This document shows, one piece after another, positions 8,310 through 21,600 of a DNA stretch of 64,000 nucleotides. The position numbers were made by a program, and so were the translations under genes. Each line of letters starts with the position of its first letter. Position 1 is the stretch's first letter. The notes beneath the pieces are model-generated. The model was given only the letters and a program-made list of their open reading frames with translations, was not told where the DNA came from and made no database searches. Source of the DNA: Lepidodermella squamata (lineage: Eukaryota; Animalia; Gastrotricha); contig JBLDXI010000056.1 of NCBI GenBank assembly GCA_047495785.1, positions 496,001 to 560,000 of the forward strand, written 5' to 3'.

Positions 8310-10239
8310 ATGGTGTCCCGTTCGTTGTTTGAAGTGTTCTTGTTGATGAGGAATAATGCACTGCAAAGTCGGCATTTGTACACGTCGTCGAAACGCAGTA
8401 AAACCAAAACCGGAGTGAGTCGTGCCGCCGGCGGAGGTGGTTTTCTGGCGGAGGAACGCGTCGCACTGGTGTCGAATGCCGACGACGAGGATGACGACCA
8501 CGACGATATGCGCGACGAAATGGCGCAACAGGTGAGAAAATTAGCTATTTCAAGTCTCGCTAAAGACGCCATCGAAAAGTTTGGGGGAAAAGTTGCTAAT
8601 GTTTTGTGATACAGTGAAATCTACTTAAATTAGACACCTCCATGATTTGACACTTTTTATCGGCGACGAACCGCAAAGACAACTATTGTTCGGACTTTCT
8701 GAATCTGAGGCAGCTCCAATATTAGACGGTTTTAGGCCTCTACGGAAGGTTTCTAAATTATGGAGGTTTTACTGTATGAATCCTTTGCTGCGTATTTACA
8801 GTTAAAATAATTTTAAGGATGTTGGATTTATACGTGTTTTCCAGGTTTTGCTAAAGCTTGAGTAGGGAATGATCATCTTACAAGTTTTGAACTATTTTTG
8901 GTCTTTTTTTTTAATTTGTGTAATTCAAGACTGATCAGCCGTGAATGTTTTTTTCTGATCCGTTTAGGTCGGCTCGGCTCTGCGGTACCGGCGGTTGCAG
9001 AACCTGCCGCCCGAGTGGACGGAGGCGATCGACGACGTGAGTTCGCAGATCGAGGCGATCGAGCGGAAAGTGAAGGACCTGAAGGCGTCGCACGACCGCG
9101 TCATCCGCCGGCCGGCCTTCGACGACGACGAGGCGGACACGGGGCGCGAGCTCGAGTCGGCGACGCGCGACATCACGGCCGCGTTCCAGCGCTGCCACGC
9201 CCGCATCGGCGCCATCTCGCGCCACCAGCAGACCAGCCGCTCGCGCTCCGAGCGCAAACTCGCCGAGAACGCGGCGCTGCGGCTCAATCGACAACTCCAG
9301 GAAGTTTCCGTCGAGTTCAAGCTAGCTCAGGTTTGCCCATTTACCTGCTTGGTGCTTACTACTTCTTTTCTTGAGAGTAATTGTGAGATTGAAGATTGAG
9401 GAATTAAAATCTGTATTGAACGTTCTAATATTTTCGAAAATTGGCCCAAATAAAGAAATAAGGAAACATCAATATCTTTGATGATGACCTTTTTCGAAAC
9501 CTTTTCAAATTATCTTGATGGATTCTGCACCCTCTGAGTTGAAAATTTGATGTCAGTTGGAAGACATTTCGAAAAAATTTCTCCGATTGTCAATGTTTCC
9601 TCAATAAGTTTATCATATCGTAAGAAAAAATGCCACCATATAAGCCAGTGTTCGAAGCTGCTAAAATGCGACTATTTGTTTCAGGTGTCATATCTGCGGC
9701 AGTTGCAAGCGAGGCAAGAGCGTTCGCAGCTGTTCATGTCCACCGGTTCGGTGCAGCAGCAACCGAGCGACGGCAGTCTTTCGATCAAAAACAACAAGGC
9801 AGCGGCGGCTCCGCGCAATTTGCTGCTCGACGACGAGGATGACAACGAAACAGTGTTGTTGTCTCGAGGCGGTCAATCTTCTGCCATGGCCGACTCGGCT
9901 TCGTATCAGAGCCTCGCTCAGCTGCAAGTTTCGGCGAATAACGTCGAGCTGGCAGCGGCGCGAGATCAGGAAATCGATCGGATCGTGCGGTCGATCGAGG
10001 AGTTGAATTCGATTTTCAAAGACGTCTCGGCGATGATTCACGACCAGGGCACGGTGCTCGATCGCATCGACCACAATGTTGAGCAAACGGCGGTTCGCGT
10101 CGAGTCGGCGCACAAATCGCTGGCGAAGGCCGAGCGCATGCAGAAATCGAACCGCAAAATGTTCATTATAGCCGGGCTAATGGCTCTTCTTGTTGCCCTC
10201 GTCGTTCTTCTCATTCTCGTCAAACTGGCCAGGATTTAG
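8310..10239 (+). CDS. STX16: Syntaxin-16 (Qa-SNARE). Exons 8310-8531, 8968-9330 and 9685-10239.
   Basis: N-peptide MVSRSLFEVFLLMRNNA, LPPEW, RPAFDD, SNARE motif RDQEIDRIVRSIEELNSIFKDVSAMIHDQGTVLDRIDHNVE and a C-terminal TM anchor. Both introns are phase-0 GT-AG. Confidence 0.94.
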
Positions 10240-12909: not shown

Positions 12910-14757
12910 ATGGCGGAAGTAATTGACAAGAAAAAGAAAAAGCACAAACAGCTGGAAGGCTCAGAACTTGCTGTAAGCGATACTGTCTTGAACAACTTAA
13001 ATTTGAAAATCCGTTTACTGTATAGGAAGCTCAGCACAACGGAACTTTCTTCCTTCAGCCGTCAGACGAACCTCCAAAGCTCAATGCCGAAGAATGGCCT
13101 CTATTGCTCAAGGTTAGCAGTTTCTTGGAATGTTTGACTTCATATCTATGCTATATTATTGTTACAGAATTTTCACAAGCTCAATGTTCGCTCAAACCAT
13201 TACACACCGCTGCCGTGTGGTTTCTCCCCATTAAAACGTCCCATTCGTGAACACGTCAAGTTTGTCTGCAGTGGATGTTGAATTGGTAAACTAAATACAG
13301 TTTTGTTATATAGGAGTGGTTTTATCAACTTGGACAAGCCAGCTAACCCTTCTTCACACGAAGTTGTCGCATGGATCAAGCGCATTCTGCGTGTTGAAAA
13401 AACCGGCCACAGCGGTACTCTCGATCCGAAAGTCACCGGTTGCCTGATTGTCTGTATCGAGCGCGCTACTCGCCTCGTTAAATCGCAGCAGGGCGCCGGT
13501 AAAGAGTACGTGTGCATCTTCAAGCTGCACTCGGCCGTTGATGACGAGAAAACTGTCGTCCGTGGCTTGGAAAAGCTGACCGGCGCGTTGTTCCAACGCC
13601 CGCCTTTAATCGCTGCTGTTAAGCGTCAACTGCGCGTGAGGACTATATATGAGGTTAAGATGCTCGAATACGACAAGAAACGTCACATGGGCATTTTCTG
13701 GGTTAGCTGCGAGGCTGGCACATACATTCGAACGATGTGCGTGCACTTGGGCTTCTTGCTCGGCGTCGGCGGTCAAATGGCTGAACTGCGACGCGTTCGA
13801 TCAGGCATTTTGTCCGAGAAGGACAGCCTCGTTACGCTGCACGACGTTTTAGACGCGCAATGGGTGCATGACAACTACAAGGACGAGTCGTACCTGCGTC
13901 GCGTTATCACGCCCCTTGAAGGCCTGTTGACCGGACACAAGCGCATCGTTCTGAAGGACAGCGCTGTGAATGCGGTTTGCTACGGTGCCAAGGTCATGTT
14001 GCCTGGTGTTCTTCGATTCGAAGATGGCATCGAAATTAATCAAGAAATCGTTCTGGTAACAACTAAGGGCGAGGCTATCGCAATTGGTAAGCTCAAACAT
14101 TTCGCCTAATCGATTTTGTATTGATGATTTTTCGGTAAATTAGCCATTGCTCTGATGACAACTGCTGTGATTTCGACTTGCGACCATGGCATTGTCGCCA
14201 AATTGAAGCGAGTGATCATGGACCGTGACACTTACCCGCGCAAGTGGGGTCTTGGACCGAAGGCCGCCGAGAAGAAGAAGTTGGTCAAGGAGGGTTTGCT
14301 TGACAAATATGGCAGGCCGAACGAAAAGACGCCCAAGGATTGGACCAAGGGCTATAAAGACCTCAGCACGTGAGTATTTCACTTTGTTTCATGATGTTTG
14401 AGGATTTTTCTGTTACTTTTTAGCGTCAAAATAACCGACGAATTGGTCGCTGAACAAAATCGCCAAGCGCTATCGGCCGCTGCTGCTAAGGACGGCGAGG
14501 CGAAGGTGAAAAAGTCGAAGAAAAAGGAAGCCGAAGCCGAGGCCGAGGCTGCTGAGGAGAACGAAAACGGCGTCGAAGAAGAAGTAGCGCCGAAAGAGAA
14601 GAAATCGACTAAATCGAAAAAGGCCGCTGAAGAGCCGCCCGCCGAGGAAGAGGAGGAGGTCGTAGAGGAGTCGCCGAAGAAGAAGAAGAAGAAGCAAAAG
14701 GAGGCGCCGACGCTGAAGAACTACGCCGAGGACGACTCGACGTCGGAAGACGATTGA
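12910..14757 (+). CDS. DKC1: Dyskerin/Cbf5 H/ACA pseudouridine synthase. Exons 12910-12972, 13026-13112, 13168-13259, 13314-14086, 14144-14369 and 14424-14757.
   Basis: [41 protein letters not shown], catalytic [15 protein letters not shown] domain, [17 protein letters not shown] and a K/E-rich tail. Five GT-AG introns of 53-57 nt keep the frame. Confidence 0.97.
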
Positions 14758-15372: not shown

Positions 15373-16711
15373 ATGTCGGACCGAATGTCCGGTGATGTAA
15401 GTTCAACTTCACATCTGTCTCAACTGATTTCAAATTATTTTTGTCATCAAGGAAGAAATTTTCGGCTCGTGTGCCAAATGTTTCTCATGCTGCTGGTGCG
15501 GTAGCAAAAAAGCCGAAGGTACAGCGGCACCCGAAACGCAGATGACATCGGTGATATGCGATCAAACCACAGATCAAGCAACCCTGCTAGCTTTCATGTA
15601 CACTCGGTACAGAGAAAAGCGGTCGTCATACAAGTACAGCGCATCCCTGTACCGCCGCCTTGATACCTTCTGCTTTTTTATCCCACTCATGATGCTTCAG
15701 TGTAGTGTATCGATCGTTTACGCTGTTGGAAATTACGACGAGGAATTCCAGCGATATTTCAGGTAATTTCTCTACGACAATTTAGAGATGTTCGAATTTT
15801 TTATTGCTGTTTCAGTGGAATCGCATCAGCAGTCAGTGCTCTGATAATTGCGATTCAAAACCGCATGAAATTCGGCGAATCAGCTAAACAGTTTCAAAAT
15901 GGCGCTAGACAATATTCCTTACTAGCTTCTGAAGCGTTCACGAAATGGCTAGCGGCTTCATCAATGACAGAGCAGCAATTCCAAGCCTTTGTCACAGATA
16001 CTGGGTTCGAAAATAAATTCGTTGAAAATTTCGCTTCATTCCACGTATTATTCTTTCAGGCAGCTGGAGAAGGAGATACAAGATACATGCCCAGGTAATA
16101 AATAAATGATGAATTTAAGCATACTAATTGAGAAAATTTTTATTTGGAAGTTCCTCCGGCTTGGGTGACCACAAAATTCGAGCGGCATCGGCTGTTGATG
16201 AAAAATGAAGAGCATGATCATAATGGGGTTGACCAAGTGATGATGTTGGGGCAACAGGCACAGGTCTTTAAATCTTTAATTTCTTTTGTTTCCATTCTTC
16301 TTTACTTCTTTATCAAGCGGGCTTTCTTATTTTGTACTATAAGTACTATTCTATAGTTTTATTTTGTAAAAATTTACTAAGTTAATGCGCTTTCAGCTTG
16401 GACAACGGGCTCGGACTAGGCTTCCTGCTGGACTGCCAGTTCGCCATCGGCCTCAGTCGCAATCAACTGAATCTATCGGCGAGGTTACGGACAGCGTACA
16501 TCAACTACCCGTTTCGCCTGTGGTGAATAGTCGAGATCCGGAGGCCTCAATGACAGTAATTGACGAAGCGTTCGATTCGAAAACGGCTGCTCAACCTGGT
16601 GCAGTCACTGCAGCAGGTGCCCGGTTAAGATTGATGCAGTCAGCGAGGCAGCAGAGCCAAGTATCAAACACTTCTAACTCGCCACCGGAAGAAGGACCAA
16701 AGCCTTTATAA
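15373..16711 (+). CDS. SLATT-like two-transmembrane protein of about 328 aa. Exons 15373-15396, 15452-15762, 15816-16004, 16060-16094, 16151-16263 and 16397-16711.
   Basis: Five GT-AG introns give one open frame: Cys cluster CAKCFSCCWC; RSSYKYSASLYRRLD, TM1 (TFCFFIPLMMLQCSVSIVYAVG), short loop, TM2 (YFSGIASAVSALIIAIQ), then NRMKFGESAKQFQNGARQYSLLASE...CPVPPAWV and a disordered tail. The gene model is firm; the SLATT assignment is by pattern only. Confidence 0.7.
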
Positions 16712-16912
16712 TGTTTCGCATTAATAAAAAGTATGAATTATTCAGGGTGCGGAGTAGTACTTGTTGTGTTTTCAGTGCGTAAATGAGCCTTTCAAGATTA
16801 AATCCAACAATAGAGCCGACGTGAAACTTTCCCACCACGCACGCGCAGCAATAACACGAGTACCGGGATAACTCCGAACCTAAAATAATATTTTGCTTTC
16901 TGCTTTGACAAT

Positions 16913-17577
16913 ATGTCGCTCGAAATATGTTTCAAAAATTGTGTATCGATATTCGGCTTTTCATTGGCCATAATTGCGCTACTGGTTAGCGATACGAGCG
17001 GCTTGTACTGCTACGTATGCAGTGGTAATTTTTCTCATTCTAGGTGAATAACGAAATATTGCCAATTTTGTTATGAAAAAAGACTGTACAACAGTGGCAA
17101 ACACTTCACTGCTGAAAGACTGTGGCGCGTATGCTGACGTGAAATGTTTGAAGACAACTCGAACCGGAACAGCCGATGGCGTTTCCAACCAGGTCAACCG
17201 GTCATGCTTGAGCGGCGTCGATGGCTGCAATAAAGAGGGCGTCCAACGATGGTTAGCTTATATATATATATATAAGAGATTTCACTCATTTTTTGAACTT
17301 TCATCCGCTTTTTGTAACAGGACCATGTACGGCACCAACAACATAACAGGTCGCAATTCTTACCTCCATTAGTCGCTTCTTAATACTTTCTTAATTTTTC
17401 AGAATACAACTGGTAAGAATGAATAAGCCGAAATTCCTTTAATTTTAACTATAATATTTTTTTATTGCAAAAACCAGTTGCTTTACAGTCGGTTGCAACA
17501 ACGCCCGAGAGATGTTGCCGAATTTTCTGGTCTTGCTGTCTATCTCTTGGTTAACTTTTCACGCCATAGAAAATTAA
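16913..17577 (+). CDS. Ly6/uPAR (three-finger) protein, probably GPI-anchored, paralog 1. Exons 16913-17024, 17083-17251, 17321-17349, 17403-17412 and 17478-17577.
   Basis: Signal peptide, LYCYVCSDC start, ten Cys ending CCFTVGCN, and a hydrophobic C-terminal GPI-type signal. Confidence 0.85.
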
Positions 17578-17727: not shown

Positions 17728-18252
17728 ATGTTAGGAGGGTTTGGTAATGTCGTTGTCCTGCTTGTGTGGCTCTCAACGATTTTCAACGTGTCGCTTGGCC
17801 TCAATTGCTTCGTCTGCACAAACTGTTCGAAAATTAGTAGTCTGTACATTCAGGATTGCGGAACAGACGAAAATGTGCGATGTTCGAAACAAGTCACCAC
17901 TGTGTATTCGGGCAACGGCTCGATAACTACAAATCGAACCTGCGCGCCAACTGGTTGCGCCGGTAAAGAAAAATGGTACAAATACGAGAAGACTAATTTC
18001 ACAGGTGAGAGAACGTATTTCGTTTTCGGCAATTTTACCTGAATTTTTCCTACCATTTCAGAATATAGCTGGTAAGTTTGACATACATATAGGTAATTGG
18101 TTTTATCACGGTATTTTATACTCAGCTGCACAGGCAATATTTGCAACGCGGCACCGATATCGATCGATTTTGATTGGGTGGTGATTGTGTCGATCACAGC
18201 TTTATTTTTGACATTTCGCGTAAAAAGACTGACCTTCGAAATAAATTGTTAA
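17728..18252 (+). CDS. Ly6/uPAR (three-finger) protein, paralog 2. Exons 17728-18004, 18062-18071 and 18126-18252.
   Basis: Signal peptide, LNCFVCTNC, NRTC and CCTGNICN followed by a hydrophobic tail. It has the same 10-nt micro-exon as paralog 1. Confidence 0.85.
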
Positions 18253-18657: not shown

Positions 18658-21600
18658 TCACGCGATTAAACTCGAAATCGAGTACTTGCTGAGCGTCGCT
18701 TTCACCGATGCCGAGGCCGGCGTTTGGCCGCTTTGATTCTGCGCGGATTGCACTTGGACACCGCCCTGGTGGTGCTGTTGTTGCTGCATCGGCTGTTGCA
18801 TAGTAGCCATCGCCGCCGCGAGAAATTGCGGGCTCGATCTCAAAAATCCCAACATTTGCTGCTGGTAAAACAGCGGATCCAGTGCGATCGACGCCAGTTG
18901 CTGGAGGGCGAGGGTGGACGGCGGAGGCGGGGCGGCTGGCAACACCAACGGCACATGCACCAACGGTGGCGAGGTCGCGGATCTACCCGACCCGGACGAC
19001 GTCGAAATTATCGAGGATTCATGCTGCGAATCGACGGGCGAGATCGCCTGGGCGGGTCGACCTGAGCCGGACGAGCTCGAAATGCACGACATCGGCGAAC
19101 TGGGTGATATATCGGACGAGGCATACGACGTCACGCTCGATTGATTCTGGGCATGATGTTGCTGGGCTGATGGTTGCATTATTTCCAGCTGCTCTGATGC
19201 GACGACAGGTTCGTCGTCGTACAACATTTCTAACACGAGTTGAGGCAACTCAGGGGCGGGCGAGTCGTCGACTGAGGCGCCTAGGACCCGCTCGCTGAGC
19301 TTGAGGCTGATTGCCCTTACGTCGGTGACTTTCATGAGGATCTTGGCCCAGTGGAACGGGTGGGCCGGGCGGCGACGGCCGACGTACTTGCGGAACGCGG
19401 CTAAAATGCGGTCTTGGCACGCCTCGACATTAACAGGTGCCGTCAACCCTGACCTGTCGCTCTGCATCAATAGAACAGCGGCTAATAGGGCGGTTTCAGT
19501 GGTGTCGAGGGATAGTCTCGCGATGCCAGCCGCAAGTTCGCCGATGGGCTCCATCAATGCAGCCATCGCGTCGTCGCGCGCCTGTCGCTGCCGTGCCTCT
19601 AGCAGACGAGGCGTGAAAGACGGGCGAGACGCGACTCGGAGACACAACACCTCGATACAGCCCGACCTCAGCAGCAACACCTGATCGGCGTTGTCGAGCT
19701 CGGCGAAACCTGGCAGCGACTTGGCGAACTCGACGACCTTGACAATAGCGGGTGACAGCAGCTCAGTCAATTGTCGCCAGGACTTCTTGCCATTTGGCTG
19801 TTGCTGCTGTTGGTTGCGGCGTAAATGGTCGCCCAGCTTCAACAACGCGTTCGAGTACGACTGAACAACAGCCTCGATCAGCGACTGCTCTTCATCGGTT
19901 AGATTCGTCGACGAGTTCGACTGAACCTCGTCACTGCTGATAGCTGATTGCTGATTCTGCTGCGGGCTCAGTAGTGAACTGATCGGCGGAACCTTTTCAA
20001 CACTAGGAGGCGGTGGTGTGGTCAACTGGCTGTTGTCTGTTTGGTTAGCCGATGAAGACGGGGGCCCCGAGGCGCCGGCCGGGTGATCGCCGGGCTGACT
20101 CGAGGTGCTCGACGAGTGTTGGCGCCTGCGTTCGCGATTCTGCTCGATCAGGCGCCGCTTCGCCAGTCGCTCGCCGTCATTCAGCACGAGATCAGCTGCC
20201 ATGCCTACTGTCAAGCACCTGACGTATCGGCATTGTTGACACTATATGGGGAGAAATAATTCGTATTGAAAAAAGTGGATGTATGAATTTAGGTTCGAGC
20301 GTCTCACCTGGTTGCGTGTTCGTTTATCAACACTGCATCCGCCGCCGAATTTACAGTCGTATTTGAGGTTTTTCTGAACAGTCCGCCGGAAGAATCCTTT
20401 ACAGCCCTCACATGTCATTGCGCGGTAGTGATAACCAGTCGCCGCATCCCCGCAAACAACGCACGGCTCCGGGCCAGTTGACAAATCCATATATGACGGA
20501 ATGTACGGTTGACCTTTTAAAGAAAAAACAATGATTTTATTTATTTCGTTCATTTTGTTCCGAGTCAAAATCAATCAGTTGATCAAACAACTACGCGTGT
20601 TGATTTAGGTGTTGCGGTCTTTGTGTTACACATCATGTTTGTTGCGCAGGGTGTCTAATAAACACCGCGCCAACTGCTCACTTGCACGCACGCACGTATC
20701 AAGTGTTTTGTTGTTTTTGTTGTTGTTGTTGCAGACGCGCATCAGCTCCGAGGCATCGGCACCGCCGGCCGGCGCGACAAAGGCAGTGAGAGCGCGGTGC
20801 CAAAACGGGGCTATTAGACACCGGCGTAACTGCGCCGGCGATTACACACCGGACGCGAGCAGAGCGCGCTGGTGTTGCGCAAGCGACCCAGACGCCAGAC
20901 AGACAGACAGATACAACACGGTAGGCCGTAGGGTCAGGGTCGTGAGGTCGGCTAATGAAATTTGGCCCGTCACGTTCGCCTTGCGCAACGTTGCACTACG
21001 CATACGCCTCAGTTCAGCAGACGGCCTGACCCCAACAGCCGTCGCCGCGTCTACTTTTATATGAGCAGTATAGTGACCCACATATACTATGCACGAGACA
21101 AGGACACGCCTGCGAGCGGCGGTGTCACTGCGCGTCGAGTGCGCGTAACGGCCGCCGTTGCACAACTCGAGCGTGACCTAAAATCAACAATCAGGCCACG
21201 GCGCAAATTCAAGGCCATGCGCCGATCGATCGATAGCATATCAATTACGGCAACTCACTCTAATTCTATACTTAGCTTCGGTGTATCGAAAGTAGGATAT
21301 CGATGATTGCAGAAATTGAGAGAGAATACAAGAATCGCAAAAATACCGAAAACATTAAGTTAAGATAAAGTAGCGCTTATTTGTGAGGAAAAGTTTGAAT
21401 CGATTTGGTAATATTTGGTACCAAAGATTAAAAAATCTTGAAAAGTCGGGTATAGTAATTTTGTACTCATTGTTGCGCTGGCTTTCACGGCTACGTTAAG
21501 TATTCCGCGCGCAAAAGATCAAAATAGTTGAGAATATTACCTTTCTGGCGCTTTCCATGCCTGCGCCCGGTCGATCCGCTGCTCGTTGATGCGTTCGAGC

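Follow-up and report, generated by a model that had tools for sequence, protein, structure and literature searches.

The six-exon gene at positions 15373-16711 (+ strand) of the window, the stretch of 64,000 nucleotides analysed here, is in our reading a genuine, transcribed host gene for a divergent stand-alone SLATT protein, one that lies nearest to the SLATT_4/DUF4231-type proteins encoded by giant viruses and marine eukaryotes. We put the probability of this reading, with the mechanism proposed below, at roughly 0.65; homology of the gene to the SLATT superfamily, taken by itself, is very probable. The SLATT-like family that it represents is an animal one of stand-alone proteins, encoded with introns and distinguished by a Cys-rich N-terminus and a long tail. 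CBASS, Thoeris and DRT systems, as well as giant viruses, widely carry SLATT two-transmembrane (2TM) effectors, and several arms of bacterial nucleotide-signal immunity persist in animals, among them cGAS-like enzymes, STING, TIR and gasdermins. By its placement in the SLATT superfamily, the window gene is a candidate animal counterpart of the predicted pore-forming defence effectors of bacteria and giant viruses.

Gene structure, transcripts and variation

Exon boundaries were read from the window sequence and each exon was translated separately. The coding sequence totals 987 nt, or 328 codons, and ends in a TAA stop at 16709-16711. Introns 1-5 are all of the GT..AG type and are 53-133 nt long. 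The parts of the gene are:

15373..15396, + strand: exon 1, with the ATG, 8 codons (MSDRMSGD) and the donor GTAAGT
15452..15762, + strand: exon 2, with the Cys cluster, the N-terminal amphipathic helix, TM1 and most of the loop
15763..15815, + strand: intron 2, 53 nt, GT..AG, within the TM1-TM2 loop and skipped in an X1 contig (see below)
15816..16004, + strand: exon 3, with TM2 (GIASAVSALIIAIQ) and then the cytosolic helix that begins NRMKFGESAKQFQNGARQYSLLASEAFTKWL
16060..16094, + strand: exon 4, a 35-nt micro-exon, QLEKEIQDTCP
16151..16263, + strand: exon 5, beginning VPPAWVTTKFERHRLL, in which the conserved module ends and the variable tail begins
16397..16711, + strand: exon 6, a low-complexity, poorly conserved tail with the TAA stop

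The gene model was compared with a public sequencing run (X1) and with a run of genomic DNA in which introns are present (X2). In X1 the exon sequence was present, introns and flanks were without depth, and one contig carried a SMART cDNA oligo. Because of this oligo, the lack of depth outside the gene and the spliced state of the contigs, X1 was treated as a cDNA library. Its contigs span the joints 15762/15816, 16004/16060, 16094/16151 and 16263/16397, and the 15396/15452 junction was seen through the loose ends of X1 contigs on both sides, so that all five splice junctions were found in cDNA. The six-exon structure proposed in the preliminary description is thus borne out by the exon-wise reading, the GT..AG introns and the cDNA junctions. 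One X1 contig of 333 nt contains both joints flanking micro-exon 4, and the contig across 16094/16151 has a synonymous A>G change at 16093. The reading of the micro-exon is independently confirmed by the homologous locus L001 and its protein P0002, because QLEKEIQDT..VPP is contiguous and intronless there. We rejected an isoform that retains intron 3 as the principal product: its frame would meet a stop at 16098, and intron 3 is spliced out in the cDNA contig.

All 11 variants that X1 shows in exons 2-4, which encode the 2TM module, were synonymous (nine of them in exon 2), whereas exons 5-6, which encode the tail, had 16 synonymous and 7 nonsynonymous variants. It follows from this pattern that the reading frame is real and that the 2TM module, which is under purifying selection, is more constrained than the tail. 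Two forms of the tail exon were present in X1 at 16486-16713, one identical to the window and the other differing from it at 17 of 228 nt; they may be two haplotypes, or the library may have been made from two animals that are close relatives. In X2, a second form is without 118 bp in intron 5 (16266-16385; TT..TA ends), which is an indel polymorphism inside the intron and leaves the coding sequence unaffected.

Homologues and their loci

Searches and scans for the window gene were run exon by exon, with single exons or database proteins as queries. An exhaustive HMMER search with exon 2 returned four cluster representatives only (P0001-P0004). P0001 is an ORF fragment of a gene on locus L005 and is 73% identical to the exon-2 query. 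P0002, a protein of 354 aa from locus L001, is 62-65% identical, and exon 3 is 65% identical to it. The window gene and the genes on L005 and L001 share 62-74% mutual identity and have different neighbours. L005 and L001 belong to the same ENA sample and are eukaryotic contigs, with RNA polymerase II Rpb1 and DENN/SBF2, respectively, as neighbours. The L005 gene retains the Cys-rich start, the position of intron 4 and the tail motif GARLRLMQ, and the CPVP/PP.W motif of exon 5 is common to L005, P0002 and the second domain of P0004.

Intron positions differ among the three genes. The loop intron lies 8 codons further upstream in L001 and L005 than intron 2 does in the window. Introns 3 and 4, which flank the micro-exon, are missing from L001, and L005 has intron 4 and is without introns 3 and 5. 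The stored P0002 sequence includes a translated in-frame intron of 60 nt (L001:6264-6323, GTAAGA...TTTTCAG) at residues about 65-84, which inserts the 20 residues GKSKKDNKWKLFCKLIYNFS into the loop between TM1 and TM2. The TTG taken as the 'start' of P0002 is in fact a splice acceptor, the protein being a prokaryote-style gene call on a eukaryotic contig.

P0004 comes from marine metagenomes and is a protein of 490 aa with two tandem copies of the module. Each copy aligns with the animal module from the pre-TM helix to the post-TM2 helix (BLASTP 1e-12 and 8e-12), and hhalign of the profile of the close (animal) homologues against the marine profile gave 98.8% with an E-value of 4.3e-17 over 137 columns. 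P0004 recurs on three short marine contigs (L002-L004), one of them from TARA; an upstream gene in L002 has an EGF-like domain. P0003, with no contig on record, has 673 aa and consists of ten near-identical tandem repeats of ~67 aa, each of which resembles the exon-2 stretch YKYS..L....FFIP...L.CS (39% identity, summed E 1.2e-15). P0003 may come from a pseudo-exon or satellite that was amplified in tandem in some genome.

Word-index protein searches with P0002, domain 2 of P0004 and alignment A4 returned the query itself, nothing, or two marine fragments. At the tblastn level, no relatives were found in viral contigs, prokaryotic genomes or JGI metagenomes, searches against phages and plasmids gave nothing or noise, and the window gene had one copy only within the window.

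Protein anatomy and relationship to SLATT families

Four features outside the exon list above are used in describing the protein:

15464..15511, + strand: Cys-rich basic motif GSCAKCFSCCWCGSKK, a candidate S-acylation site on the predicted cytosolic side
15584..15664, + strand: basic helix before TM1, LLAFMYTRYREKRSSYKYSASLYRRLD, with a net charge of +5 over YTRYREKRSSYKYSASLYRRLDT
15665..15730, + strand: TM1, TFCFFIPLMMLQCSVSIVYAVG, with the conserved F..PL..LQ
16616..16639, + strand: tail motif GARLRLMQ, identical in L005 and ARSRLRL in P0002

The motifs by which the preliminary description had recognised the protein were all located, namely SYKYSASLYRR, a TM1 with IP (FFIPLMMLQ), G.AS...ALIIAIQ and KFGESAKQF...ARQY..L..E. 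Its PVPP.WV ending occurs as CP/VPPAWV, spanning intron 4, and its N-terminal Cys cluster as CAKCFSCCWC. A similar Cys motif, C.CCFCFKK, stands at the same place in the homologue on L005. With the KK that follows it, and on the side predicted to be cytosolic, the cluster resembles an S-acylation site and is a putative one.

TM1 comprises residues 72-93 of exon 2, with a KD15 maximum of 2.01, and TM2 residues 1-15 of exon 3, with a KD15 of 1.61. In the basic helix, the positions with R, F and Y do not vary among the close homologues and the marine homologue, and the F, P, L, L and Q of TM1 are invariant in alignment A1. The TM2 pattern SA.SA..IA.Q and the P and Q of TM1 are conserved across close and marine homologues, and these motifs may supply a polar, small-residue face. 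Net charges of the flanks are +5 before TM1, -2 in the loop and +3 after TM2; from this distribution both termini are predicted to be cytosolic, with the TM helices forming a hairpin. Three helices come after TM2 and carry K[FY]GE, ARQY..LASE and a C-P-V-P turn; beyond them lies a tail predicted to be disordered.

An AF2 model of P0002 residues 30-215 had a pLDDT of 72.9, its alignment being shallow (6 rows) and the modelled loop containing the 20 residues of translated intron. The helices in the model are H4-57, H78-103, H105-131, H138-158 and H163-181, and the pre-TM1 helix is continuous with TM1 as one long helix. Domain 2 of P0004 gave the same helix pattern at a pLDDT of 58.5 and was kept out of the fold search. 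Hydropathy, charges and AF2 agree on a hairpin of two TM helices, with a helix before it and cytosolic helices after it, as in SLATT proteins.

Profile searches pointed to the same superfamily. In an NCBIfam scan covering 18,950 models, SLATT_4 was the sole match of window exon 3 (E 1.5e-3, model positions 61-100 of 154) and of P0002 (E 1.8e-4), and the top match of L005:4247-4489 (2.1e-5) and L001:6322-6640 (4.8e-5). The SLATT_4 matches of the window gene and its close homologues start at model positions 56-61 and end at 100-145 of 154, a region that corresponds to TM2 plus the soluble helices. In PADLOC, the CBASS '2TM effector' model was the sole match for P0002 (E 2.4e-3 to 8.4e-3). Scored as exon-wise pieces and as the intron-containing homologue, the window gene and its close homologues stayed below every curated cut-off, with 18.4-24.4 bits against 55 for NCBIfam SLATT_4, and the animal sequences reached 11.9 bits against 27 for Pfam SLATT_4. 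Pfam scans of the window exons taken singly gave no match, exon 6 included. The N-terminal half (helix and TM1) alone had no direct SLATT match and is tied in through P0004 and the fold. P0004 passes Pfam DUF4231 (27.0 bits, cut-off 24.7) and matches Pfam SLATT_1 at 3.5e-4; its NCBIfam matches are SLATT_4 (2.1e-8), SLATT_1 (2.4e-6) and SLATT_fungal (1.7e-3), and RT-associated SLATT (RTasSLATT) models are on top in PADLOC.

The fold of P0002 was compared with viral and other structures. The best BFVD matches in Foldseek were SLATT-annotated giant-virus proteins (probability 1.00, TMq 0.55-0.66), and the SLATT matches came from Pyramimonas orientalis virus, AaV, marseilleviruses, Fadolivirus and Klosneuvirus. 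Eleven of the top 35 carry the SLATT name, including ranks 1, 2, 5 and 7, with TMq values of 0.49-0.66. These structural alignments have 9-17% sequence identity to the viral proteins, and their E-values are modest (6.8e-4 at best); helical hairpins superpose easily. The best ESM Atlas clusters were Nucleocytoviricota (TM 0.71 and 0.66), and invertebrate iridescent viruses were among the fold and feature relatives with weak scores. All of the nearest language-model clusters with a family name were SLATT_4, DUF4231, SLATT_2, SLATT_5 or SLATT_1. Foldseek against the PDB gave nothing below E 0.9, and an exhaustive VIA scan gave generic helical bundles only.

Other Pfam matches were noise (E >= 0.03) and a PDB sequence search returned nothing, so that a SLATT profile was the best meaningful match, without a competing family. 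A known animal 2TM family, a better match to which would have counted against the SLATT layout first proposed, was rejected, there being no such match in the Pfam, PDB sequence or PDB fold searches. The SLATT layout itself is supported by the profile and structural matches, with the animal sequences scoring below threshold.

Proposed mechanism, alternative readings and genomic context

In the mechanism that we propose, the N-terminal Cys cluster and KK, if S-acylated, would hold the N-terminal helix on the membrane. The hairpin would have both ends in the cytosol, with a three-helix cytosolic bundle after TM2 and a disordered tail carrying GARLRLMQ. Protomers may assemble side by side in the membrane, a step suggested by the family, by analogy with what is currently proposed for SLATT effectors in bacteria. 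On that proposal, the binding of a nucleotide signal makes the effectors oligomerise into assemblies that breach the membrane (bioRxiv 10.64898/2025.12.03.692087; eLife PMC7159879), the bacterial pore mechanism being itself a prediction (bioRxiv 10.64898/2025.12.03.692087). The Pro and Gln of TM1 and the small-residue/Gln face of TM2 (SA.SA..IA.Q) could line or destabilise a conduit, and the cytosolic helices and tail might control assembly, possibly via a small ligand or partner. By the same analogy, the protein may act as a pore, cell-death or immune effector.

The protein might instead be SLATT-derived but domesticated for a constitutive, non-immune job and not be a suicide or immune effector; it could serve, for example, as a channel or scaffold of an organelle or of the plasma membrane, with S-acylation as its anchor and the tail as its regulator. 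We regard this as a possibility to be taken seriously, although we lean against it. The strong purifying selection on the module (11/11 synonymous), the 62-74% identity among three genes with different neighbours and the presence of transcripts in an unchallenged cDNA library are in its favour. So is the genomic setting, a single copy in the window amid housekeeping genes, with no sensor or enzyme gene adjoining. The genes identified around it are:

9547-10236, + strand: SNARE protein gene
13303-14106, + strand: dyskerin gene
18661-20574, - strand: nuclear hormone receptor gene

No gene for a nucleotide-signal enzyme or sensor (SMODS/cGLR, cGAS-like, TIR, SLOG, RT or CARF) adjoins the window gene, and such an association is not required of eukaryotic or viral stand-alone SLATT members. 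High conservation and a single copy in the window are atypical of fast-evolving conflict effectors, and the strong conservation is compatible to about the same degree with an immune role and with a domesticated, housekeeping one. Against domestication, the characterised contexts of the family are all conflict systems (PMC7159879; bioRxiv 10.64898/2025.12.03.692087).

It is unlikely that the gene encodes a lineage-specific animal 2TM protein unrelated to SLATT, with similarities that reflect a generic hairpin and helical bundle. Such a reading would fit the sub-threshold HMM scores of all animal sequences, the superposition of many unrelated PDB helical bundles at Z 8-10, and the high Atlas feature scores, which arise by chance in 4-10% of shuffled proteins. 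However, SLATT-clan models were the sole or top matches in three HMM libraries at consistent coordinates, non-membrane helices included, and P0004 provides a bridge, through the hhalign result of 98.8% and its own passing of DUF4231. Moreover, the top viral Foldseek matches are specifically SLATT-annotated, while the PDB gave nothing under the E-value stated above.

A narrower version of the effector reading, which we consider very doubtful, is that the host animal retains a SLATT-type two-TM effector gated by an immune nucleotide second messenger, either cyclic dinucleotides made by cGLRs or cADPR-like molecules made by TIR proteins. In that case the S-acylated N-terminus would position the protein and the tail would keep the effector off until infection; if true, animals would have a second CBASS/Thoeris-style effector arm beside STING.

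The reading of the gene as contamination from a bacterium or virus, or as a virus or mobile element (NCLDV, iridovirus or polinton) that inserted recently and has no function, has a negligible chance of being correct: judged by fold and features, giant-virus proteins are its nearest recognisable relatives, but the five GT..AG introns are spliced in cDNA, animal genes lie on both sides on the same contig, the frame is intact with only synonymous polymorphism in the core, intron-bearing homologues occur on other eukaryotic contigs (L001 and L005), and the viral, prokaryotic and JGI metagenome collections hold no tblastn-level relative. We reject it on the grounds of the introns, the support from cDNA and the flanking host genes, and the earlier view that this is a host gene and not bacterial contamination holds.

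Returning to the preferred reading of a divergent stand-alone SLATT protein, we compared it with known systems. SLATT_4 (NF033632 / PF18186) and DUF4231 (PF14015), which are stand-alone proteins in Nucleocytoviricota, polinton-like viruses and protists, gave the best HMM, fold and language-model matches. They share with the window protein the order of basic helix, TM1, short loop, TM2 and cytosolic helices, and are likewise stand-alone proteins of about 200-300 aa. Unlike them, the window gene lies in an animal genome, has five introns and scores under the cut-offs, and its protein has in addition the N-terminal Cys cluster with KK and a tail of ~140 residues that is predicted to be disordered. 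The bacterial SLATT effectors of CBASS, type VII Thoeris (ThsH) and DRT10/UG17 are also predicted to have a 2TM hairpin and a cytosolic helical part, but their similarity to the window protein is remote, and their genes share operons with the gene of an enzyme that makes the signal (CD-NTase, TIR or RT), whereas the window gene has ordinary animal genes as neighbours. The closest relative outside the animal homologues is P0004, with RF.EK..Y, F..PL..LQ, SA.SA..IA.Q, K[FY]GE and C-P-V-P in common; it differs in its two tandem modules and in being without introns, Cys cluster or long tail.

No animal SLATT gene was described in the literature searched, where SLATT in its biological sense came up in papers on bacteria, giant viruses, polinton-like and MELD viruses, and algae; an earlier mention is possible, the founding 2015 paper being outside this search. 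Current family models miss the animal SLATT-like branch at threshold. As a conserved, expressed animal gene of this kind, the window gene is a tractable target for work on permeabilisation, gating and an antiviral versus a cellular role.

Directly downstream of the gene are small Cys-rich ORFs at 16913-17372 and 17728-18042 (+ strand), with LYCYVCSG... and LNCFVCTNCS... These had no Pfam match and, by eye, look like Ly6/three-finger secreted proteins.
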